A stretch of 64,000 nucleotides of DNA from Carpediemonas membranifera BICM (taxonomy: Eukaryota; Protista; Fornicata): assembly GCA_019828565.1 (NCBI GenBank), contig JAHDYR010000038.1, forward strand, positions 140,735 to 204,734, written 5' to 3'. The position numbers were made by a program, and so were the translations under genes. Each line of letters opens with the position of its first letter. The first letter of the stretch is position 1. The notes under the pieces are model-generated. The model had not been told where the DNA came from, ran no database searches, and saw only the letters and a list, made by a program, of their open reading frames with translations. Below, one piece after another: positions 3,144 through 48,960 of this stretch.

Positions 3144-6100
3144 ATGTCCTCAGATAAAGCAGGACAGCGTAAGCCAGTGGATGCAACCCTCACTGGTAAT
3201 GGTGAGCGATTGATCGCACCAATACCACGTGGGACATCCACGATGAAGGACACTGAGAAGCTTTTCAAATTTTCATCGAAAGATATCAGCCAGTATGACC
3301 TCCCCTCTGAAAAACCCAGGTATAAGAAGGGAAAGATCACTCCTGTTGACGCTGGCGACGTCGGCAACAGCCATGTTGCTTCTGCGCTCAACGACTTTAA
3401 GCGTGCCTCATTTGCCGGCCCCGTCGACGAGCCCAGCTGCATTCGCCTCGAAAATCCGTCCATCGCCAAGTCTAGCCTTCGGAAAATCGAGGACGAGATC
3501 TACGCAGAGGACACCCAGGCCAACCCCCGCCCACTCGTCGACGGCTGGCGCCCCCAGCACCCCATAACCCAAGACATCGACCGTGCCCGCCAGATCGTCA
3601 CAGAGCTCCGCACGGGCGAGGATGCGATCCGTTACTTCTCCCAGGCAGGTGACAGGGACCCCGTGAAGTTCGTCTACCTCGTCCCTGCCGAAACAGGCAA
3701 AGATTTCCGCCCCTACGACCTTCTTGTCGTCCCTAAGAGCAAGACGGGCACCGACTACTACACCATCTCAGCCAGTGGCGTGGTCCACGTCTGTGACGGC
3801 CAGCCGTCGGATGTCGTTCTCCTCGGTGATTGGCTCCGGGAGTCTTCCTTGTTCAACGTGCTCCGGTGTATGCCGTTCTTCCAGGAGTACTTCAAGCGCA
3901 AGGCGTTCAAGCTCTGGGTGAAGCATGTCCGCTATCGTCGCTTCTGTAACAACAGGCAGAGACTCACTCAAACCCTCTTCCCTGCCAAACCGCACTTCCT
4001 TGAGCCTATCCAGAAGGTCTACGCCCTCTGCTACAAGCTCAGCGTGACCAAGGGCGTCGATATAACCGTCAAGCAGACCTTTGAGAGGGAGGAACTCCAG
4101 CAGGTCCAGGCACAGACCCGCAAGGAGCTCGGCGAGACTCTGGAGGCCACGGTGGAGGGCATACTCGCCATACTCACCGCCACGATCGACGGCGTCGTCG
4201 CCCGGACCCGTTCGGCGGCTGACGAGGACGACACCGGCCTTCCTTCGTTCATCCAGCCGCAGAAGGTACGCTCCATGGTGCAGGCTAAGGCCGAGCTCAT
4301 CGAGAAGCAGCGCGCAGTCCGTGAGGCCGAACACGAGCGCCGCAAGCTCGGCGACCTCGTGCGCCTCTTTGACACATTCGTCCTCGAGGCCCTGATCGCA
4401 GTCAACCTCCACGCCGCCACAAGCGTCATCGCCAGCGTGTCAGACACCGCCGTGAAGCGCAGGGCTGGTTTGCTACTCACCATGGTGGAGTTCGACAGCG
4501 TCGCATGCTCGTTCACACCCTCCAAGGCGCAGTATCGCGACACTCTCGAGTCCATCTTCACAGAGCTCAGAAAGACTGTCACGGTCGCACCCAGAGTCAT
4601 CTCTGCGCCCGTCGTCCGGCAGCACGTCCATCGCGGCCGCGAGACGACGCATGTGGGTGTTGACGACTTCATTCTCGGATCCCCAGAGGGTGCAGTTTTG
4701 CCGTACGAGCCATTCATCGAGGCCGAGGCCAAGATCTTCAGCACACTTGAGGAGAACTTCCAGCAGGCCGTTGCGTACGCCCAGGTCTTTGATGAGTACC
4801 GCGACGTCCACAACTTCGGCCAGACGTGGGCTCCTGAGGCATATTCCAACCAGGACGCCAGCGTAGAGACCCTGCGCGCGGACATCGCGAAGCTCCAGCG
4901 CTGGATCGTTGAGCTCGAGCGGATGAAGACGTCTCAGGCGGTCGACCTCATCCACGTCGATTCCAGGAAGCTCAAGCAGCGTCTCACGCCAATTCCAGTC
5001 GACGCCCTTGAGCATGTCAAGCAGGTCTGCCTCCAGAAGTTCCGCGACCTTGGCAACAGCGTCGTCGACGGCTTCCGCGGACACACCAAGGTCCTCGCCC
5101 AGCAGCCGCGCCACCTCAAGGAGTTTACAGAGTTCGTCGAGCTCGTCAACCACCTCGAATCCATCTCCGAGGGCCTAATGGAGGACGTCCGCACGTGCAT
5201 CGAGCTCGACAAGGTCATGGCAGAGGCTGACCCCAAGCTTGAGCAGGCATCGGACAAGGCCCTCCTCGGCGCCGTTGGTGACTACAAGGAGAGCTTCCTG
5301 GCAGCCAAGGAGGAGGCTGCGGTGTTCATCAAGCAGCAGATGGGCTCCATGGTCTCACAGCTTGACTCCCATATCGTCACCCTCGAAGAGGAGACCGCGA
5401 AGATGGCGGATGAACTGCAGGAAGGCATCTTCGTCGACGCGAACGCCGACCCTACACAGGTGCTTTCTCGGCTCCAGGCGATCGGCGAGGCAATCGCGAC
5501 TCTCGAGGGCGGTGCTTCCACATATGGCAGCTACCAGAAGCTTTTCAACGTCTCCGAGGCCGCTTTCGAAAAACTCCAGGAGACCCGCCAACTTCACGCC
5601 GACAAGACGAACCTCTGGACGACCGTCGACCACTGGAATGAGGTCCACCAGCAGTGGCTGTACTCGAGCTGGCTCACACTCGACTCTGAGGCTATCGTGG
5701 CCGAGCTCGCAGCTATCCACAGCAAATCGGTGCGGTTTAAGAACAATCTGGAGGAGGAGGGCGAGGACGGTGTCGCTTCTACGCTGGTGCGTCGTATCAA
5801 GCAGTTCCAGCAGCATTCAGACCTTGTCTCCACCCTTGGCAACCCCGCCCTCCGCAACCGCCACTGGATGAAGATCTTTGCCCTATTGGAAGGCGGGGAC
5901 CAACTCGTCCCCGGCTCTCCCTTCACCCTCGACCAGCTCATGCAGATGGGCATCGATCGCGTCAAGACCGAGGTGTCTGACATATCAGGCACAGCCAGCG
6001 GCGAGTACTCGCTTGAACTTGCCCTAGATAAGATCGAGGCCGGCTGGGAACACATGGAGTTCACCGTCAAAGACCACGTTAAGGGCAAGGGCACTGCCAA

Positions 6101-9100
6101 CCAGGCGGACGTGTTCATCCTGTCCTCGATCGAGGAGATCCAGCAGCTGCTTGAGGATAACATGGTCACGCTCCAGACCATGCTTGCGTCCAGGTTCATT
6201 GTCGGCATCCGTGAGCCCGTCGAGAAGTGGGAGCAGCGCCTGATCCTGCTCAGCGACGTCCTCGATGAATGGGTGACATGCCAGCGCTCCTGGCTCTACC
6301 TCGAGGTCATTTTCTCTCAAGCAGACATCCAGCGCCAGCTCCCGGTCGAGTCCCAGAAGTTTGCCCGGGTTGACACAATGTGGAATCAGCACATGGCCTC
6401 TGTCCACGCCAGACCCGGTGTCATTGCTGTCCTGGGCATCGAGGGGCTCAAGGACAAGTTCGTACAGGCGAACCAGGCGCTGGACGAGATCCAGAAGTCC
6501 CTCGAGGATTACCTGCAGACCAAGCGTATCGCCTTCCCCCGGTTTTACTTCCTGTCCAACGACGAGCTCCTCGAGATCCTCTCGCAGACTACGGACCCCC
6601 AGGCCGTCCAGCCCCACCTCCGCAAGTGCTTCGAAGCTATGGCCCACCTCGACTTCGCGGAACCTGGATCCGATCAGATCAACGCCATGCAGTCTGTTGA
6701 GGGCGAGCGCGTGATGTTCATCGAACCCCTCTTTGCCCGAGGCGTAGTCGAGTCATGGCTCAAGGAGATTGAGGGAGGTATGGTCGCCACAGTCAGAGAC
6801 CATGTCGCCCGCTGCCTCAAGGCTGCGATGGACCGGCAGCAGACCCGGGCTGAGTGGCTCCAGTCGTGGCCCGCCCAGTGTCTGCTCACTGTCGATCAGC
6901 TGATGTGGACTAGCGGAGCAGAGAAGGCACTCAACGCGGTCGAGTCCGGCACTGATAAGGAGGCCCTAGTGCTCTTCCACGAGGCATGTATCGCCCAGCT
7001 CGACCAGATGGTGACGATGGTAAGAGGCCAGCTCACCTCCCTCCAGCGCAAGGCGATCGGAGCACTTGTCGTCATCGACGTGCACGCCCGAGACGTCCTC
7101 GAGCGAATGAACCAGGCGGGCTGCTCCTCCATCCACGACTTCGACTGGGTCGCCCAGCTCCGGTACTACTGGGAAGAAGACGACCCTGAGCGGCCTTGCA
7201 AGACTCGGCAGACGAACACACAGCTCGACTACGCGTACGAGTACCTCGGGGCGTCGGGCAGACTCGTTGTCACACCCCTAACCGACAGGTGCTACATCAC
7301 TCTCACATCGGCCCTGCATCTCCACCTCGGCGGGTCGCCCCAGGGCCCCGCTGGCACAGGGAAGACTGAGACCACCAAGGACCTCGCCAAGGCTCTGGCG
7401 GTGCAGTGTGTTGTGTTCAACTGCTCTGAGGGCCTCGACTATAAGATGATGGGCCGCTTCTTCTCCGGCCTCGCTCAGTGCGGTGCGTGGGCATGCGTTT
7501 GTTTCCTTTTCCAATCATTTGATTACGCAGTTTGACGAGTTCAACCGTATCGACATCGAGGTTCTCTCCGTCATCGCCCAACAGATCCTCACGATCCAGC
7601 AGGCAATCATGGCCTCAGCCAAACGTTTCGTCTTTGAAGGCCAGGAGATCCCACTGAACGCCAGCTGCGGCTTCTTTATCACCATGAACCCCGGCTACGC
7701 TGGCCGTACTGAGCTCCCCGATAACCTCAAGGCCCTCTTCCGCCCGATCTCGATGATGGTACCCGACTATGGCCTCATCGCAGAGATCATCCTCTTCTCC
7801 GAGGGCTTCAGCACCGCCCGGGCCCTCTCCCGAAAGATGGCGCAGCTCTACAAGCTCTCGTCTGAGCAGCTGTCACAGTGTGACCACTATGACTTCGGTA
7901 TGCGTGCTGTCAAGTCCGTCCTCGTCATGGCGGGCGGGCTCAAGCGACAGTATGAGGATCTCGGCGAGGACATCGTGCTCATCCGTGCGCTGCGAGACTC
8001 CAACGTGCCCAAGTTCCTCGCCCAGGACGTCCCTCTGTTCATGGGCATCATCCAGGACCTCTTCCCCGGTGTCGAGATCCCCTCGGTCGACTACGGATCG
8101 CTGCAAGAGGCTATTGAAGCCGACCTCACGTCCCATAACCTCCAGCCCGTCCCTGCTTTCGTCACCAAGTGCATCCAGTTCTACGAGACTCACATTGTCC
8201 GGCACGGCCTCATGCTCGTCGGCCAGTCGGGCACGGGCAAGAGCACCATCTGCACATCCATGGCACGCTCCCTCCAGGCGCTGTTCAAGGCGGGCGACAC
8301 TACTTCCCCGCACTTTAAGCCGGTCCAGCGTTACATCCTTAACCCCAAGAGTGTCTCCATGGGCGAGCTCTACGGTATGTTCGATGAGGTCTCCCACGAA
8401 TGGACTGATGGCCTCGTGGCCAACATTGCCAGGCAAGTGGTCAACGCAAGAGACGATACCAAGCGGTGGATAGTATTTGATGGGCCAGTCGACGCCCTGT
8501 GGATTGAGAACATGAACACCGTGCTCGACGACAACAAGATGCTCTGTCTGGCCAACGGCGAGCGTATCCGCCTACCGGACACTGTTAACCTCGTCTTCGA
8601 GGTCCAGGATCTCGCTGTTGCCTCCCCTGCAACCGTCTCCCGCTGCGGTATGGTCTACCTCGAGTCCGTCCACCTCGGCTGGCGTCCACTCGCCAAGTCT
8701 TGGACTGAGCAGTTTAAGCCCGCTGCGGCTAGACTCATCTCAGTCGCCCTCGGCTTCGATATCGACCATGAACGCGAGAAGGCTGACCAGGAGCGTGCAA
8801 ACAAGCTCGCTAAGGAGGAAGACGAGGAGCGCCGCCAGGCCGACCTCGCACGCGAGAAGGCCCGCGCCGCCAAGGGCCAGAAGGACGGCGAGGCCTCCGA
8901 CACCGACGATGACGAGGACAGCGGCTCCACAGTCGACTCCCTCTCTGACAACGACGAGGACGTCCCTGAGACGACGAACTCACGCCGCCGCAAGTCGATC
9001 TCTACGGTCGGCACGGACCAGCGGTTCCTCGCACTCGAGGCCAACTGCACGGCACTTGCCGAGGACGTGTGCGAGATCATCGTCGATAAGTACATGGACA

Positions 9101-39062: not shown

Positions 39063-40292
39063 CTACACCCAAGCGCTCGTGGAGAGGCGCACGGCTTCAC
39101 TGACGTAGGTCTGCATCGAGTCGAGCTGTTTCCAGCCCCCGATTGCTTGGATCACTGCTGGGGCTACACCTAGCTTCATCATGTGGACTGCGCCTCCTCT
39201 CCGGAATGAGTGGCCCGACGCGCGCAGCACCTCCTCTAGGTCCATGGACATCTCCCATCTTCTCCAAGGGTGGTCTCTGTTCATCAGGGAGGACCTGTTG
39301 TCCTTGATCAGCGCGTCCCTGGCCTCGAATGAGCGCCACAGGGGTCCTTCATCTGGGAGGTTTTCCATATGTCTCGCAAGCCAGTCTGCCGGGTTGTCGT
39401 CTCCGGGGACGTTAGGGACCAGCTTTAGCATGGGTTCATCCGATGTCTTGGAGCGTCGTATGGTGATGGTGATGTCCCTGCCGTGTCGTTCGACGTCTGA
39501 TGTTGAGAGCCCCCGTATCTCCCCCGACCGAGATATTGTCGCGAACCCGACCAGCCCGAAAGCTATTGCTTGAGTCAATGCTGGTGTGGCGCTCTTGCCT
39601 GCTTGCACCGCGGCCTGTGACAGGGTCTCCCTGGCTATTGGCCATGCTTTCCCTGTTCGACGCTGGCTTGACGTTGGGCACCTTCCAGCCAATCTGCCAC
39701 AGGCCTTGATCAGGGCCCGGTGGAGTGGTGGGCATTCTATGGGTTCGCCCAATGCGGTCATTCCATCTCTGATGTTTGCCTCCTTCGTTAGCAGTGAGTC
39801 TTTGGCGAGGAAGGGCACCTCCCCTATCATGTACCATAGCAGTGTGTCGTCATCGTCCCCCGCGATTGCCACCTCCTCGAACTCTTGCACCCACTTCTGG
39901 TCATGGATTTTCTCGTGGGCTTGTCGTACGATCTCCCATGCAGCTTCCCGTGGGGTTGGTGCCGGGTCGTCATTTTGTCCGAGGTAGGCCTCGAAGTCCG
40001 AGTCATCTGGTTCTCTGGTCATGTTGCGGAAGAATGTGAACTTTGCGGTCTCTGTTGCAATTCGATCACGCGTCACCTTCTCGAGGCGGAGCAGGAGCGG
40101 GCTGGACGCGACCTTTCTCTCGACGTCCTCGTTCTTAGGACGGCTAGCCCGGGACCATATTATCTGCGTTCTGGTTCTGTCGGGTGTCACGCCTGCGGCT
40201 CTTAGTGCTCGGTGTCGCGCTTGCACTGCTGATGCTGATAGGAAGATTCCGAGGCTGACGTCGTCACCGGGACCCAGTACGCCCTGAAGGGA
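39063..40292 (-). pseudogene. Tyrosine recombinase of family-1 unit 1, separated from its upstream part by the LINE insertion
   Basis: TISRSGEI, RRSKT, GHSFRRGGA, GGW and MQTYV; nearly identical to the unit 2 and 3 YR. Confidence 0.88.
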
Positions 40293-40766
40293 CAGTTCAC
40301 CAATGATTTCAGCAAAGTGGAAACACTTCGATCATGGATGGACAAGGACCAACAGGCCTGGCCTATATGGATAGGGCAGTGCCCCATGGAGCTCAGAAGG
40401 AGCGGCCTTGGCCTCCTGTCTGAACATTCAAGGGTTGCTATCAGGGCATACCGCTGGGCGCGAGTGGGAGCTCCACGCCCATACCAAGGAATCAAAGTGT
40501 CTTCATGGAACGTATGTTTACAAGGAAAAGGAAAACAACCGTCGAGGGCCAGTGCTAGCACCGGCGGCTACATGGTTTTGTCAAGACCACAAGGAAGGAA
40601 GGGCAGCACAAAAGGGAAACAGGGGCCGTCGATAGAGGCTAAAAGGAGACTACGAACAAAGCAACAACAACTACACAGAAAGGCCCCGCTACTCAGAAAA
40701 GGGCGACGCATTTTTAGGACCGCGCCTTTTTGGAAAGAATGGCCTATATAGTACGGAGCATGGACA

Positions 40767-43700
40767 ATGGGAGAAACTGGAAGGCCTGGACGGAGACCTC
40801 ACCCGGATATGTACATGTGGCCCGACTTTCGGACCCAAAAATTCCGACCCAGTTTATGGACTAGGAAAAGGGGAGAAATTTTGCACTCAACAATGCAGGT
40901 AGAAATACCGACAAGGATCAGGGATTCCACGCAGAAGCAGTGGGAGGACATCAGGGAACTACTGGACAGCTTCCTCGCTGAAAGGAACGATTCAAGGACT
41001 CTACTTCTTCGTAGAACAGGCAAGTTTACAGGAAAGTCGCTCAATGCGAACTCCAAAGGACGCAAGGAAGTAATCATGAACGCCAGACGCATCCTCTTCG
41101 CAACCGGCGTCACTGACAACAAGGACATCATCCTCAGGAACCCATGCGGCATCCACGGCCTCCGCGACCTTTTCTACATGCTCACAGAGGCGCTCAACCC
41201 CAGAGACGAGGAAGCAAAGGACATGGCACAGGCACTGGAGCCCAAGACGCTGAAAGCGGGCTTCACTGGCATGGCAAGATGGCCATCTGAGAAGGACATC
41301 GAGACGGCGATCCTCAAGCCGAAGGAAGATGGGCCCATCGAATGGGATGTAGACAGGGACAGCGTCAAGAAGGCCGAAGGGTCGTTCATACTGGTATCAG
41401 GGGCTCATGGAGACGAGGCCGTAGAAGGCGTGCCTTACGACAAGGTATGGGATCCGGCAAACCAAGGCCCGGTCACCAGAGTGGCCTACGAGCAAGAGGA
41501 CGGCAAGTACAGGGTCATCCTAGAGCTAAGCGACACGTCAGCATGGTCCATCAGCCGCTTCATGGAGGAGGCTAGGGACATCCTCAGGCTTCAGGCACCG
41601 GAGGCCCCGGCCATATGGCAGGCAGCATGGAACAAGTCAGGGATCTACCTGAAGGGCAGAACCAATATCCTGGGCGAAGGGGAGGAGACCCCCCTTAGCA
41701 ACGAGCCGCCGTTCCGGAAGGTGAGGCTGGAAGTGCTCAAGGCCACCTCGGTCCGCAGCAATAGGGACGAACATGCCGATCTGGACAGGTCGTCCGCTAG
41801 CACGGTCATCGACGGAGACGAGGAGCAACATGTCAAGGACAAGGAGGAACGACGCCAGCAGGCCACCATGCCCGGCAGAAGAAGCCTCGACGACAGCCTC
41901 CTGGAAGTGAACAAGGACATGGTCGGGGCCAACCAAGGCAAGATCGACCAGGACGAGGAGGTCGACTCAAACAAGGTCAGCAGCCAGCCGCCGAGGATGC
42001 CTAGAAAGGACAAGGAGAAACGACTGGTGATCGGAGCCATCGACTTCGAGTGCGCAGACCCTGGCGTCAAGAAGGCAGGGATCCCTGCCATCCCGGTTGA
42101 GGGCGGGATCGTACTCTTTGACCTCAGCACTGGGGACATTCTTGGACACGGGCATGGCCTGTATTACCAGGACATACCGGCAGCAAGCATGGACCAAGCG
42201 AGGTACACGGCATGGGCAGTGACGGGGCTGCCGCCGGCCACCTTCGTGGAGGTCGGGACGGGGCGGCCGCCGATCGAGTATGAGAAGCACATACATACTT
42301 TCAGGGACTGGGCCAACCGCCTGGCGGCTCAGCTGGCAAGGATCGAAAGGTCGGAGGGTTGGAAGATAATCATGTATGCAAAGGGGGTGGAGATGGAAAG
42401 CTTCCTCCTCACGAACCCCACAAATGGACTGGAGCAAGGAACCAGGGAATTCTTCCAAGCTAGGCTGGTGGACGAGAAGAAGCTACCAGAGATCCTGGAG
42501 AACAACGGCAAGGGAGGAGGCTGGCCAAAACCTCAGGGACAACCTCGACAAGGCCAACTACCTGGAAGCAGTAACAACATGGTCAAATGGATGGCAGAAC
42601 AGGAGCGAGCCCAAGGGAGTCTGTCCGTACCACAGACACACCGCGGGTTGCTACCACTGTGGGTTGGCGGATACAGTAGTCTTCACAGCCAGGATCAGGG
42701 CCCTATGCAAGGAGAGGATGAGCACCCCAGACGTCTACCACTACATGGGTAAGGCACTCGACAAGACCATGGAAGCAGTCGGGAAGGCGGAGCCGGGCAT
42801 GGATATCATGGGAGGCCCGGAATTCGCGACAAGGAGGGACACCTTTGAGATCTTCGGCACGTACCCGATCGGGGACGCAAGGGACGTCAGCAGGGAAGTC
42901 GGCGACAGGATCCTCGTAGTCCCGGACAACGGACACCGCTTCGGCATCGGCTTCGGGTTCGGGGAGGTTCTGTTGGGCATGAAGGGCATCTTACTGGCCC
43001 CCCTCACAATCATGGACAACGAAGGTGTACTGGAGAGAAGCCCGCTATGGACCATCATGGAAAGAGCCACGGCTAACCAGCTCCGCATGGTACGCGTCAG
43101 GAAGGGCCTAGGGGCAGCAAGGGAGGAGGACATCATAACCATGGCCATGCTATACGAGTGGTGGCCCTCGAAGGAGGCTACGGCTCATCAAGGAGTCTGG
43201 GGCTGCGACGACCTAGCAGAGAGCCTCAGGGACTATGAGAAGGTCATAGTCAACGTCAAGGCCCCCAGGAACAGGGGTAGGATCACCCTAGGGGCGAGCT
43301 TCATCCCGAGAGACTGGGGCATGGTCAGGGTCAGCGAGGCTGGGACCATCCTAAGCCGCATGCGCAAGGAAGGGGCCAGACTAGTCTCGGCAGCTATCCC
43401 GGACGAGCCCAGAGCCAACACAGTCAATGTCCCAGGCATCACGTATGTCCCCACCATCGACGGAAAGTCCGAACAGCCATACCAAAGTAGGTTCTTCGAC
43501 AACGGCCTGGAGGAAAAGGCGAGGCGGATTAGCACCAGGATGGTGGGCAGGCACTTCGGCCAGGACGCGGATCAAGGACATCACGACCAGCATGGAGACA
43601 GGGAAGAGGACAGAAGGGTAGGACACGGAGCCGGCGGTAGAGCTGGTGTCAGAGCTGACGACAGAACCGGCGACAGAGCTGGTAACATGAACAGGACCTC

Positions 43701-44271
43701 GGATCGTAACCACGGAGGAGACGACAGGGAGAGACAGGACAACACGGGAACGCAGATGAGAGGCTCGTTCAGCGGGAACACCTGGGCCGGTAGAGGCTCA
43801 GAGGGAGGCATGGACAACAGCAAGGATCACTCTTCCTCCACGACGCTCAAGCGCAAGGAGGGCAGCACGAGTAGGATCATGGACTCGGACAGCGGAAAGA
43901 GAAGCAGGCACGAAGAGGACATGGACTGGGAGTCTGGAAGCAGACAGGCAACCGGCATGGACTCGGAGAAGCTGCGGCTCCGAAAGCAGTTGGCAGAGGC
44001 GCAACAAGAGATCTCAGCGCTCAAGGCTGCCCGACTCATGCAAGAGCAAGGCCACGGAAGGTTGGTGCTCTCCGGCGTCGCGACTAAGCCCAGCAAGGAG
44101 AAGCCCACGATCCCCCGGCACAAGCACAAGAAGGCTAAGAAGGCCAAGCAGATCTCACCCATGGACCTGATGACCCAGTTCATCACGGTAATGCAGAGTC
44201 TACAAGGACAGCAAGTGAGTCAGGCCGAGGACAGCTGCAGCGGCAGTGGGGAGTCCACGGAGGAGGAGTAA
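40767..44271 (+). CDS. LINE ORF1 (frameshifted at about 42500-42620) with a Maelstrom/DEDDh-like domain and C-terminal coiled coil/basic tail
   Basis: ORFs 40767-42752 and 42376-44271 overlap. AIDFE...IPVEGGIVLF...TGLPP...YAKG lies in the first frame and CPYH...HCGLAD in the second, followed by EKLRLRKQLAEAQQEISALK and RHKHKKAKKAK. Confidence 0.7.
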
Positions 44272-44603
44272 GGACATGGTAAAGCAGTATTCTTTCAAGG
44301 AACAAGCAACATTTTCTTTATAATTCACAAGCCCTGGCTCCCACCCAGGGCCCGGCATTAGCTGAAATGCACTGCCGGTAGGCTGTAGCGGCAGCCAAAG
44401 GGGGGGTCACGTCATATCGTCCCCCTCCTAAGTACCCTGCCCGAAGAATGGAAGGTCACCAGGTGGTAACAAGGTTGGCCTGACAAGGGTCACCGAGACC
44501 GGCATCTAGGCCCCTTGTTAGGACAAGGATAGCAGGAGAGGAGCGGGAAGCTGGGGCTCCCAAATTCTGGGAATTCGCAGGATAAGGAAACAGGACAAAG
44601 GCA

Positions 44604-47600
44604 ATGGTAACCTACAAGATACTTAGTCTGAACACAGAGGGACACATAGGAAGAGGAAAGGACTTCACGGCGTCTATGGCAACGGCGATTCAGCTAAGGT
44701 TGAAGGACATAGAGGCAGTACTCATACAAGAGACATGGAGAACGGCGAATACGAGGGTTCATTGCTTCATGGACCTTGACTACGCACTAGCAGGGAGGGA
44801 GACGGAAGAGGACCTGGTCTTAGCCAACGAAAAACGAAAGGCGGATGTCAAAAGTCAGCACCGCATCAACCGACAACTAGGCATAGCAGGCAATGACGAA
44901 CCTGCGCCAAGATGGAAGGGAACAAGGGAAGGCATCGGCACGATAGTGAGCCCACACGCAACTGCAAAGTGGGACATCGGCATAACGGACAGCCTATCGG
45001 GAAGAGTGCAAGCCAGCATAATGAGAACCGGCAGGGACATACTAGTCATCAACGTGTATGGCCCTCCATCCGGCCACAGCAAGCAGGAGAAGGATGGATT
45101 CAGGGACACTATACAGAAGATCATGGACATGAAAGGGAGCATGGAGGCCATAATTATGGGAGACTGGAACATCGACCCAGGCCAGATGGAAAGATCCACC
45201 CGGTGGAAGGATATGATGGAGAAGCACAGGCTCAAAGCCATCATACCCAAGTCTGGGACGCTCACATCAGGAACATCAACCCCGGACTTTGCAGTGACAA
45301 CACCAGGAATCCAGGGGGCGGAGATTGAGGTGGTAGAGTCTCAGAAGGTCGGGGTATGGGGCTCAGCACACAATGGAATCACACTAGCATGGAAGGAACA
45401 ACGGTACTATGGCAGAAGTGAGCGAGACGTGGCTCTGGCCATACCCGAGGTGCACACCTGGCCCATGAAAAGAAGGAGGGGCCAGTCACAGTCTCAAAGC
45501 TGAACAGGATCAAGAGCTCGGACCAATGGGAAGAGACTATAAGAGCATGCATGGGCGACCCAGTGAACAACAGGGGAGCAAAGGCAAGGGACAAAGTGTT
45601 CGGGAACGGAGTGTGGAGCGAACTCCAGCGAACCCCATGGACAGAAATAGGCAACAGGACCAGGAAGGAAAGGATGAAAGAGGAGCTGGAGAAATACTGG
45701 GGAGAGCGCAGGGCCAAATGGGTGGCCGACATCAGCAGAAGTGCAAAAGGGGGTATAGGGCCTCAAGGGCCTCAGTGGAAGCTGCCATCAGAAGGTGGTG
45801 GTGTGACAACCAATACAAGGGAATGCCGGAGAGCCTCCTCAAGGACGGAGTGATAACCACGGACAAGGCGGCCATCAGCGAGATCCTCTTGCAACAGTAT
45901 GCTAGAGTCAGCAGAGGCAGGGAACCCACCTGGAAGACATGGAGGGGCAGGGACGGAAATGAGTTCAAGGAAAGCGAGGTCAAAGCCGCAATCAAAAGGA
46001 TCAGGAGGGACACCGCACCAGGGCCTGACCTCACATCTGGAGACATGCTGAGAGAGCTGGATGAGAAAGGCCTTAGGGAAGTGACGAGGCTCATCAACAG
46101 GGTCTACAGGGAGGGCGACGTACCCAAAGCATGGAAGTATGCCACAGTGTCGGCCATACACAAGACAGGGAAGCCAAGGGTCAAGCCGGAATCATATAGA
46201 CCAATATCCTTGACACCACTGCTGTACAGGGTCTATGGTAGATTGCTCAAGATACGTCTGGAAGCAGCAACGAAAAGGTTCATACCAAGAGAACAGGCTG
46301 GTTTCCAGTCAGACAGGGACGTCATCCAGCAGATACAGTACATTGTGCAGCGGCACCAGGAGGGGGGTGAGACCACGTCAATCTTTCTGGACATCGAGAA
46401 GGCATATGACACGGTACCAAGGGACATTCTCATGGATAAGCTACAGGGTATGGGGGTGGAGGAGCACTTGATCAGGGCAATTCAAGGCACAATAAAGGAA
46501 ACCTGGATATCAGTCAAGGGGGCAAAGGCATGGGAAAGAACCAACAGGGGAGTTAAGCAAGGGTGCGTCCTGGCACCGACACTGTTTGTGCTGTTCATGG
46601 CTAACTGGCCCCACCTGGCCAGAAAGAAAATCAAGGGAGAACGGTACGACATCAGAGAACCGCCAAGGACCACGAGCCACCTCAGCGACCGACTACCGGC
46701 AGCACTTACCATGTTTGTGGATGACACTGCGGTCACAGGGAGCAAACCGGAGCATAGCCAGATGGTCGCCAACATAATGGTGGACATAATCAGAGAGCAT
46801 GAAATGAGGGTGAACGCCCAGAAGAATGTAATGATTAGCGTGGACAGAACAGCCCTAGTCAGGATCGAGGGGGTAACACTACTGCCAGAGAAGGAGGCGA
46901 GATACCTGGGATTATGGATCGCAAGTGGGAAGGACCCTATGTCGGCCTGCATAAGGCGGAAACAGGAGCAGAGCGAAAGGTACAAGAGACTGGTGAGATG
47001 GGCAGGGTGGACCAGGGCAAACATGCCAGCACTAGCGAGCAGGCTACTACTGGAAATATATATATGGCCCAGGATCCTCTTCGGAGTCGAGGTGTGGGGG
47101 AACGCACCGGGAGGTAGAAGGATCTGGAATGACTGGCAGGGAATCATGGCAGGAACAGGACCGGGAGGGGGCGCAGCCATGAGGCTGATGAATGGATGGG
47201 TGGACCTCCAGGCACACATGGAATGGCTGGCAGTCAAAAGGATAGTCAACTACAGGGACCAGGATATACCAGTCAGAAACAGAGAATGGGGGCGGGGCAC
47301 GGTTATGTGGGAAGCTAGGGAGAGAGTGCAGCATCTACTGGAGGGCACCAGAGAGGGAGCCCCTAAACCAGCGCTACTGGATTATGGCATGGAAACGATC
47401 AGGAGGGGGTGGATGAAGCGGTGCAAAAGCCGTACGGCACTAGGACTAATGGAAATCATGGGGACAAGGAAATTAAGCAAGTGTCTGCAAGGTAAGCCTA
47501 CGGTAGACCGAAAGGCTGGGAAGGGGCAAAGCAGGGCGGAATGGAAGAGAATTGTATCCATTGCAGCCAATGTCAGCCCATCCCCATCGTCGGCAGAGAG

Positions 47601-48046
47601 AGGGGAGGGCCCTATGAGAGCCATCACAGAGCTGGCCCAAGGCGCTGACCTGAAGAGAGAAATTAGCAGACTATGCCCCCTATGCTCGGAGGAGTCGGAG
47701 GTGAGCCTGTTCTACAGGATCATTAGGGAAAAGCCAGGACCAGCAAGGAAGCAGGAAATGATCAGGGGAGTGGGCAGAGGGCCAGAGGCTAGGATCGGCA
47801 GCGCACATAATCTGTGAATGCCCGGCAGTAGACAGGGGAGAAGCTTGGACAAAGCTGTGGACAGCAGCGAAGCACAAAACTAAGGACTTGGAAGTAAGGC
47901 AGGGCCCCCAGGGCGAATGGTACCAGGAAAGACCCATCCTAGAATTACAGCAACTAATAATATGGGGCTCGGAGGACATTTGGGAAGGCCTCACGGCAGG
48001 ACTACGGGAACTGGCAAAGGTTTACAACAGCTTCAAGGTGGAATAG
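44604..48046 (+). CDS. LINE ORF2: AP endonuclease - reverse transcriptase - CCHC knuckle (about 3 frameshifts)
   Basis: EN: ILSLNTEG, LIQET, INVYGP, IMGDWN, TPDF, GSAHN. RT: APGPD, YRPISL, QAGF, FLDIEKAYDTV, GVKQGCVLAPTLF, FVDD, RYLG. CPLC (about 47673) pairs with HIICECP in the next frame, which stops at 48044-48046. Confidence 0.88.
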
Positions 48047-48960
48047 AAGCATGTCATGAACCCCTGACTCCAGGACCGGGAAGGGATGGACAAGGAATCA
48101 GCCATGGACCACCCTCGCTGGTGCTAAGCTCCTGGGATCAGTGAGGAAAGGCCCCACGTATCCCGGTAGCCAGGAACCAAAGCAAGGGAAGGAACGACTG
48201 CAAGGAAAGAACAGGAAGGACAGACCAGAAATAAGAAAGAAAGGACATGCGACAAGGACAGAGCAAGGATAAGGTCAAGGAAATCCATATTCATATGGTT
48301 GCACCACTCGTTGGGACCCCAAGGAAACTGCAGGGACTGGCCACGGGGGTCGGAGGGGCACAGGTGCCCCTGCCGCCCTTGTTAACGACATGGGAAACCA
48401 AGGACATGTAGTGCAAGCGAAATGTTGTAAGGGGTAACAGGACAACCAGGCCTAGTGCCTGGGGCATGCCGCTGACCCACGCCACCTAACCGGGGTAGAC
48501 AGCATGGACTTAGTCACTTTCCCCGCCTTCGGGTAGGCTTCTTAACAGAGTCGAGGGGGCATGGAATTGGGGAACCGGACAGACGAGAGGGTGCCGTGGC
48601 TGAACGGCTCTACAAGGACTGCAGGGAAGCAAGGAGTGTCATAGTCAAGGTTCTGCAGGACGATCCTGCCTGTCAATGCCCCGAGGACAGACCCCCAGGC
48701 TCCCCGGATAGTTGCCGGACTTTCAGGGAGACAGGAAAGCATATTTGCACGGAGATGGCCGCAGGGCCTCTGGGGCGATTGGAATCGGCTTTCCGCGGAG
48801 ACAGTAGCACCGAAAGCCCAAGGCAAACGCTGCTGACCAGTTTGCCACGGGAAATAGGCAGTACCCCGGGGCACTCAGCTCCAAGACAACGGGAAACAAG
48901 CTCAGTCCGGGGTCAGAATCCAAGCACCATAAATTTCTTTCTTTCTACGCCCTGAAGGGA

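Follow-up and report, generated by a model that had tools for sequence, protein, structure and literature searches.

A probable DEDDh exonuclease domain with a Maelstrom-type zinc motif in ORF1 of a LINE from Carpediemonas membranifera

Can ORF1 of a non-LTR retrotransposon be built around a nuclease of the kind found in Maelstrom (MAEL)? The question is raised by a locus of Carpediemonas membranifera, for which an earlier note had described a Maelstrom-like nuclease with DEDD and Glu-Cys-His-Cys (ECHC) residues encoded in ORF1 of a LINE. The locus lies in a 64,000-nucleotide stretch of contig JAHDYR010000038.1, here called the window; coordinates are window positions and all features are on the forward strand. 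To our knowledge, LINE ORF1 proteins are viewed as RNA chaperones, with the esterase as the single enzymatic exception, and in the literature no report was found of an exonuclease domain of the Maelstrom/arenavirus nucleoprotein (NP) kind in any LINE ORF1.

The element and its reading frames

The host element of the domain is an APE-type non-LTR retrotransposon. The whole copy in the window is 8653 bp long (40293-48945) and is nested in a tyrosine-recombinase retroelement. It is flanked, as the earlier note had stated, by a target-site duplication (TSD). The duplication is perfect and 15 bp long: the left TSD copy (tacgccctgaaggga, 40278-40292) and the right one (tacgccctgaaggga, 48946-48960) were both read directly. 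The 3' end of the element has no poly(A) tail, its final letters being ...aaatttctttctttc. ORF2 consists of an apurinic-type endonuclease part (44604-45503; Pfam Exo_endo_phos_2, E 2e-7) and a reverse transcriptase part (45526-47817; Pfam RVT_1, E 1.4e-32), which are in different frames in the window copy; in a sister copy ORF2 is a single uninterrupted open frame of 1153 codons. The genome contains full-length, 5'-truncated and internally deleted copies with 98-100% (mostly 99-100%) identity, some of them about 100% identical across almost the full length of the element. Assignment to the LINEs is based on the 15-bp TSD, on an ORF2 with endonuclease and reverse transcriptase (EN-RT), and on dispersed, often 5'-truncated copies. 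The LINE is young and multi-copy.

ORF1 (40767-44271) is split over two frames in the window copy by one extra G (GG to GGG) at 42512, as seen by comparison with other copies; in intact copies it is an open frame of 1172 codons encoding a protein of about 1170 residues. The peptide strings that had been quoted from ORF1 were all found in place. The frameshift reported with them was also there, in the form of this single nucleotide, which may be either genuine or introduced by long-read assembly. At least 11 copies carry the extra G and at least 26 do not, and the copies reading straight through 42512 are otherwise identical to the window copy over the compared stretch; in run X2 the sole contig spanning the position lacks it. 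Numerous 1-bp indels between the LINE copies show that the repeats are imperfectly assembled. Provided that the assembly is correct, the window copy is frameshifted inside the exonuclease domain. All analyses of the intact domain were made with a natural read-through copy, using neither a consensus nor frame repair.

The exonuclease domain was the only region of ORF1 recovered by HMM in all lineages. The region on its 3' side (about 42750-43600), for which a PIN/NYN domain had been suggested earlier, was modelled by AF2 with an unusably low pLDDT of 33 and gave no usable match in an ESM Atlas feature search; outside the exonuclease, ORF1 may thus harbour a cryptic RRM. Weak matches to coiled-coil families in ORF1 relatives suggest that a coiled coil is probably present near the C-terminus. 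Like the known LINE ORF1 types (RRM/CTD with coiled coil, CCHC knuckle, PHD, SGNH esterase), this ORF1 is located upstream of the EN-RT ORF and shares the probable C-terminal coiled coil, but its conserved core is of the exonuclease type, and a 1064-residue ORF1 searched at E<=10 had no Pfam match to RRM, CCHC, PHD or esterase domains. An ORF1 with an enzymatic function is not without example, since CR1, L2 and RTEX elements encode an esterase there.

Fold and conserved residues of the ORF1 core

The domain comprises about 255 residues (42021-42783, residues 24-277 of the modelled segment), as judged from the AF2 model, structural matches and invariant residues. The model (pLDDT 78.6, pTM 0.79, built from only 10 sequences) has the element order of the RNase H-like DnaQ-H fold (beta1-beta2-beta3-alphaA-beta4-alphaB-beta5-alphaC). 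With Foldseek, DEDDh exonucleases and MAEL were matched at E values of 1e-4 to 1e-3, the best match being 3'hExo (E 1.4e-4). An unbiased search with VIA, covering 48,161 chains, gave animal Maelstrom (Bombyx 9NHC and 5AF0, Drosophila 4YBG) as the best or tied-best match: 9nhc_F was ranked first (Z 12.1, 192 residues aligned), 5af0_C scored Z 11.7, and 4ybg (Z 11.5) had the longest coverage, with 197 residues. The structural comparison with MAEL that the earlier note had proposed yielded a match, at an identity to animal Maelstrom of only 9-10% in the structural alignment. Many DEDDh exonucleases reached Z 11-11.8, and the MAEL scores were within 1 unit of those of DinG-exo, ESRP1, 3'hExo, RNase T and Pol III epsilon; therefore the fold by itself does not single out MAEL. 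The highest identities among the structural matches were obtained with the arenavirus proteins Lassa NP (Z 10.1, 18%) and LCMV NP (Z 9.9, 17%). The BFVD viral fold library gave generic DEDDh exonucleases only, and the ESM Atlas feature neighbours of the domain were unnamed or belonged to RNase_T/Rv2179c-type exonuclease clusters, none of them Maelstrom.

Sequence profiles were silent. At E<=10 no Pfam family was matched by the intact domain or by the whole ORF1; either half of the split ORF1 in the window likewise gave no family, and at E<=1 neither MAEL nor any DEDDh family was matched in the relatives. Genome scans gave no match with PF00929 (RNase_T), for which controls were positive in 11 of 14 genomes, and none with PF13017 (Maelstrom), for which the controls were likewise silent in every genome. 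A phmmer and profile search against PDB sequences produced chance matches only (E>0.4). A homologous-protein search with an 11-sequence alignment at E<=10 retrieved a single protein, of the same LINE ORF1 family, and relatives were likewise absent from JGI metagenome contigs and IMG/VR when these were scanned by pattern. Since no sequence profile detects the domain, membership in the MAEL group has to be argued from fold and motifs. The Pfam Maelstrom check suggested earlier gave no match at any threshold tried, and homology to MAEL proper can be put forward only as an inference.

The motifs were examined in the alignment of 11 diverged domains, which are 24-48% identical to the reference copy. 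Eleven positions are invariant (E33, E50, E149, D174, C224, P225, H227, H235, C236, L238 and D240), and D31, E33, E50, E149, C224, H227, H235, C236 and D240 are conserved in every lineage compared, with D31 replaced by Y in one copy. For sequences so far apart this conservation is, on the alignment, far beyond chance. The Exo I motif D31-F-E33 (42042-42050; D31 at 42042-42044, E33 at 42048-42050) lies on beta1 (model strand 24-36). The predicted Exo II acid, E149 (42396-42398), is in a helix (146-154) just after strand 137-143; the assignment, made from this helix position, places a Glu where DEDDh enzymes usually carry Asp. The invariant D174 is encoded at 42471-42473. In the segment C224-P-Y-H227...H235-C236-x3-D240 (42622-42672) the Cys, His and Cys predicted to bind zinc (codons C224 42622-42624, H227 42631-42633, C236 42658-42660) are interleaved with the Exo III motif H-x4-D (H235 42655-42657, D240 42670-42672). 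The fourth predicted zinc ligand, E50 (42099-42101), is on beta2 (model strand 47-57) and is equivalent to E137 of Bombyx Mael (PMC4408791). In sequence and topology the ECHC tetrad is complete, with E50 on beta2 and C224, H227 and C236 on the loop before helix 237-253. The spacing C-x2-H-x8-C-x3-(D) is exactly that of C290/H293/C302/R306 in Bombyx Maelstrom (PMC4408791).

These features have to be weighed against the view that a generic DEDDh exonuclease (ERI-1/3'hExo, RNase T or Orn-like) was recruited by the LINE and acquired a lineage-specific zinc site, independent of MAEL and arenavirus NP. The first place of 3'hExo in Foldseek, the Z difference of less than 1 between MAEL and other DEDDh enzymes, the language-model neighbours and the silence of PF13017 would all fit such an origin. 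However, PF00929 was without a match as well, and MAEL chains aligned over 192-197 residues as compared to 153-180 for all other matches. Moreover, the four zinc-type residues occupy the same secondary-structure elements as in Bombyx Mael and keep the same distances up to the last catalytic position (PMC4408791), and a survey of DnaQ-like exonucleases reported the ECHC finger in MAEL and arenaviral ExoN only, the aligned cellular ExoN domains being without zinc finger (PMC7968707). Taking these data together, we consider generic recruitment unlikely.

The conserved core of ORF1 is thus probably, as far as model and sequence can tell, a DEDDh-fold 3'-5' exonuclease domain with a stabilising Glu-Cys-His-Cys zinc site of the MAEL/arenavirus NP kind. 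The earlier description of a Maelstrom-like DEDD and ECHC nuclease agrees with the fold, with the invariant motifs at Maelstrom spacing and with the linkage to EN-RT. In the proposed mechanism zinc would be bound through E50, C224, H227 and C236, two Mg/Mn ions would be held by D31, E33, E149 and D240, and H235 would serve as general base; the domain would strip nucleotides off 3' ends within the LINE ribonucleoprotein. Sequence comparison shows the domain to be under purifying selection: pN was lower than pS in 45 of 45 pairs, and dN/dS was 0.13-0.6 where synonymous sites were unsaturated.

Could the domain nevertheless be catalytically dead, its function limited to RNA binding or packaging within the ORF1 protein? 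RNA chaperoning is the classical role of LINE ORF1 proteins, animal MAEL is devoid of nuclease activity while binding single-stranded RNA (PMC4408791), and the Glu at Exo II departs from the usual Asp. In inactive MAELs, however, DEDD is lost, whereas here D/E/E/H/D are kept across all lineages despite deep divergence. A DEED arrangement is also seen in exonuclease ORFs of other retroelements, and the authors judged the invariant residues there to be compatible with activity (PMC5408684). Exonuclease activity is plausible because a protist MAEL-domain protein with DEDD and ECHC, that of Entamoeba, has Mg/Mn-dependent exoribonuclease activity (PMC4408791), and the same is predicted for the LINE domain. 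A dead module is accordingly given a low probability.

Lineages of the domain and its linkage to EN-RT

The domain has at least 150 matches in the C. membranifera genome, spread over many contigs. It is shared by diverged LINE lineages, four at the least: three subfamilies and a more remote fourth (P0014). A second assembly, GCA_002919055.1, encodes at least four ORF1 proteins with the domain, followed downstream by EN-RT. An EN-RT ORF was present downstream of the domain wherever this was checked (the window family, subfamilies 2 and 3, and the second assembly), so that the association about which the earlier note had asked is fixed in these lineages. A search of 1.84 billion representative proteins yielded only 15 with the domain, and all traceable ones come from these two assemblies; no cellular or other non-LINE relative was found in the same set.

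These numbers bear on the idea that a single LINE copy acquired a host gene by one-off 5' transduction or chimeric capture, or that the assembly was mis-joined. No support for the idea was found; the one point to note is the imperfect assembly of repeats, of which the 1-bp differences among copies are the sign. The copy number, the spread over diverged lineages and two assemblies, the lack of non-LINE relatives among the representatives searched and the location of the entire element inside one TSD pair all speak against it, and its probability is negligible. Copy-number and lineage data refute both a one-off capture and a mis-join, and the confinement to one copy that the earlier note had named as a test of its proposal was not observed. 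The word "captured" in that note presupposes a direction of transfer, whereas the representatives searched contained no cellular relative.

Related systems, possible roles and significance

By description, one close cellular counterpart is the MAEL protein EHI_192630 of Entamoeba histolytica (Zhang 2008, PMC2628886; Chen 2015, PMC4408791), which has the DnaQ-H/DEDDh fold, the full catalytic set and the ECHC tetrad, and a protist host. It is a stand-alone cellular gene, whereas the LINE domain is part of a mobile element; in contrast to protist MAEL, the LINE domain escapes the Pfam Maelstrom profile and has Glu as Exo II acid. Animal Maelstrom shares the spacing of zinc ligands and last catalytic position, but has lost DEDD and carries an HMG box, while the LINE domain keeps the active site. 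Animal Maelstrom silences transposons for the host; the LINE domain belongs to the transposon.

The C-terminal exonuclease of arenavirus NP (Lassa 3R3L, LCMV 4O6H) resembles the LINE domain in its DEDDh residues and ECHC site, including H-C-x3-D, and in being the exonuclease of a selfish RNA-based replicon, placed inside an RNA-coating protein. In arenavirus NP, judged from Lassa, the zinc His and the last Cys are further apart. The arenavirus enzyme differs in that it is part of a viral nucleoprotein and degrades dsRNA, evading vertebrate innate immunity. Among retroelements, LTR retrotransposons and Athena/Terminon elements of bdelloid rotifers encode in ORF3 an exonuclease of the DnaQ superfamily with intact catalytic residues (DEED variant), for which a role in 3'-end processing was proposed; Vesta2 and Vesta5 ORF3 also have a Cys-His-Cys motif (PMC5408684). 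The rotifer enzyme is, however, DEDDy (RNase D-like) and encoded in a separate ORF3 of LTR or Penelope-like elements in an animal host, whereas the LINE domain is DEDDh and located in ORF1.

What the exonuclease might do for the LINE can be suggested with reserve, and the counter-silencing and RNA processing put forward in the earlier note are likewise hypotheses. The best guess, and a tentative one, is that it would trim 3' ends, either that of the LINE's non-polyadenylated RNA or the one that primes at the target, and so enable target-primed reverse transcription. A second and somewhat more doubtful guess, drawn by analogy, is that it would destroy double-stranded or small RNAs and blunt the host Argonaute pathway. 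ERI-1 and arenavirus NP exonucleases destroy such RNAs, and the host genome contains two Piwi-domain genes. As to expression, parts of the window are contained in only two runs, both as low-depth contigs; one of these runs is RNA by guess only, and its contribution is a single contig of 161 nt, which speaks neither for nor against expression. A long shot is that catalytically intact ECHC-zinc DEDDh exonucleases have long been a component of selfish replicons based on RNA (LINE ORF1, arenavirus NP), that host Maelstrom and/or the arenavirus exonuclease descended from such a retroelement protein, and that the LINE enzyme is an anti-silencing weapon against the dsRNA or small RNAs feeding Argonaute.

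The ORF1 exonuclease family is very narrow and, being invisible to Pfam, would be missed by routine annotation. An ORF1 built on what appears, from its residues, to be an active 3'-5' exonuclease would represent a new functional class of LINE ORF1, and would place a nuclease of the Maelstrom/arenavirus type on the transposon side of the host-transposon conflict. The finding makes testable the shaping of 3' ends by non-polyadenylated LINEs, the existence of retroelement-borne suppressors of RNA silencing, and the origin of the MAEL domain and of the arenavirus exonuclease.

Reading frames of the LINE and the break in ORF1

All peptides quoted in the earlier note were recovered in a long reading frame, ORF1, that begins at position 40767 on the forward strand. 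This frame lies in an insertion of 8653 bp (40293-48945), bordered by a perfect 15-bp direct repeat, the target-site repeat tacgccctgaaggga (40278-40292 and 48946-48960, forward strand). Besides the long first ORF, the insertion contains an apurinic-type endonuclease (EN; Pfam Exo_endo_phos_2, E 2e-7) and a reverse transcriptase (RT; Pfam RVT_1, E 1.4e-32). It is a LINE nested inside a tyrosine-recombinase retroelement, and there is no poly(A) tail at its 3' end.

The exonuclease domain of ORF1 (42021-42783) had been described as split by a frameshift, and the window copy does carry one: over 834 bases its single difference from the read-through copy L021, located in an element with an internal deletion, is an extra G at 42512 (GG to GGG). 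The extra G is carried by at least 11 copies and absent from at least 26; in the copies without it the ORF1 frame is open over 1172 codons. Comparison of the window copy (40293-48945) with the full-length sister copy L058 (G000:C6:736421-745069, G000 being the host genome) revealed 8 substitutions and 19 indels, 18 of which were one-base length changes in homopolymer runs. This pattern between near-identical copies points to residual, uncorrected long-read consensus errors in repeats. Given this pattern, and given that in an independent run the sole contig covering site 42512 was without the extra G, the ORF1 break may not be biological and the reported frameshift is possibly an assembly error. 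The domain analyses used the natural read-through copy, with no frame repair.

In ORF2 of the window copy one A is missing at 45467 and another at 45744 relative to two sister copies, so that EN and RT fall into separate frames. In a sister copy, EN and RT together form a single uninterrupted open frame of 1153 codons.

Predicted fold and invariant residues

AlphaFold2 was supplied with ten natural copies that represent three subfamilies and share 26-48% identity with the reference copy. Its model of the domain is confident (pLDDT 78.6, pTM 0.79), and the strands and helices follow one another as in DnaQ-type exonucleases. Foldseek matches in the PDB were exclusively DEDDh exonucleases and Maelstrom (MAEL) domains (3'hExo, 1.4e-4; Bombyx MAEL, 2.8e-4). 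The VIA structural scan, which is independent of Foldseek and covered 48,161 chains, ranked Maelstrom 9nhc_F first (Z 12.1, rmsd 4.2 Å, 192 residues), with Maelstrom 4ybg at Z 11.5 (197 residues). DinG-exo, ESRP1, 3'hExo, RNase T and Pol III epsilon were tied with Maelstrom within 1 Z unit, and the Lassa and LCMV nucleoproteins (Z 10.1 and 9.9) had the highest residue identity among all matches (18% and 17%). The exonuclease fold is thus certain, whereas the tie leaves the subfamily uncertain.

Natural copies were aligned with ORF1 proteins of a second assembly, GCA_002919055.1. Across this alignment, in which identity with the reference copy is 24-48%, E33, E50, E149, D174, C224, P225, H227, H235, C236, L238 and D240 were invariant and D31 almost invariant. 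Exo I corresponds to D31-x-E33 and Exo III to H235-x4-D240, and E149, placed by its helix, would be the Exo II position. The predicted zinc ligand E50 is on beta2, C224 and H227 are in the loop ahead of the last helix, and C236 immediately follows the catalytic His. The zinc ligands of Bombyx Maelstrom are E137 (beta2), C290, H293 and C302, in the same C-x2-H-x8-C-x3 spacing as in the LINE domain, and its last catalytic position is taken by R306 (PMC4408791). A survey of DnaQ-like exonucleases described the ECHC finger solely in MAEL and arenavirus NP (PMC7968707), and Mg/Mn exoribonuclease activity is documented for an Entamoeba MAEL protein in which DEDD and ECHC occur together (PMC4408791).

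The MAEL-like DEDD + ECHC domain proposed in the earlier note is thus borne out by fold, invariant motifs and spacing, but not by sequence profiles: Pfam, including its Maelstrom profile, gave no match to the domain at E<=10. PDB sequence searches with the domain, an RNase_T profile run against the genome, and pattern scans of metagenome and viral sequences were likewise negative, and a word-indexed protein search found nothing linking the domain to other families. Since no sequence profile detects it, its putative MAEL membership is based on fold and motif signature rather than on demonstrated sequence homology.

Association of the domain with the LINE

At least 150 matches to the domain were found in the genome. 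They form groups with ~100%, 52% and 34% identity, and a further, more distant lineage is represented by the protein P0014. Each of the Carpediemonas subfamilies tested has EN and/or RT ORFs downstream. Of four contigs examined in the second assembly, two likewise have them and the other two end shortly past ORF1. Among 1.84 billion representative proteins, a profile search yielded only 15 relatives and no stand-alone cellular homologue. Every relative that was traced proved to be an ORF1 protein, or a fragment of one, encoded in C. membranifera or GCA_002919055.1, with direct EN-RT linkage observed for three. With region-by-region HMMs, the exonuclease was the one ORF1 part recognised in every lineage, at E 1e-9 to 1e-49. 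The ORF1 N-terminus was never recovered, and the segment past the exonuclease just twice. Non-synonymous differences were fewer than synonymous ones in 45 of 45 pairs (crude dN/dS 0.13-0.6, at unsaturated sites). Confinement to a single copy would, by the earlier note, have refuted its proposal; the exonuclease domain is instead part of the element and not a passenger.

At least five copies (G000 C27:64184-70507, C1:773279-779987, C24:133223-140631, C54:248552-254893 and C43:22163-28506) share one internal deletion (element ~5361-7681, most of RT) and keep ORF1 with the exonuclease; they look like a non-autonomous derivative, repeatedly copied, presumably in trans. A second conserved ORF1 segment (window ~42750-43600; motifs ILVVPD, GIGFGF, GMKGILLAP, WWPS and AFIPRDWG) is common to subfamilies 1-2 and weak in two second-assembly proteins; it had no Pfam match, and its AlphaFold2 model (pLDDT 33) was unusable. 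At locus L047 (5309-9001) a Ty3-type polyprotein (RT, RNase H, integrase zinc domain), probably a nested insertion, lies directly 3' of a subfamily-3 LINE ORF1. The annotated P0014 (KAG9391364.1, 908 residues) has a remote version of the exonuclease at residues ~180-393 and, within the same gene model, an apurinic-type endonuclease at 661-822; it represents either a LINE lineage with fused ORF1 and ORF2 or a gene call merging both.

Novelty and proposed function

Bdelloid LTR and Penelope-like elements carry DEDDy exonuclease ORFs (PMC5408684), and DEDDh nucleases are known from P and piggyBac DNA transposons (PMC3627910). The literature searched contained no report of an exonuclease or MAEL-type domain in any LINE ORF1.

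The domain is probably an active, zinc-stabilised 3'-5' exonuclease within the LINE ribonucleoprotein. Because the 3' end of the element is defined and non-polyadenylated, our first guess is 3'-end trimming: the exonuclease would act on read-through transcripts, or on the target 3' end used for priming. Our second guess is that the LINE exonuclease might blunt silencing by degrading double-stranded or small RNAs, as do the exonucleases of ERI-1 and arenavirus NP. The host genome has two Piwi-domain (Argonaute-family) genes (G000:C7:87108-88037 and G000:C65:23790-24737), which makes the presence of a small-RNA pathway in C. membranifera plausible.
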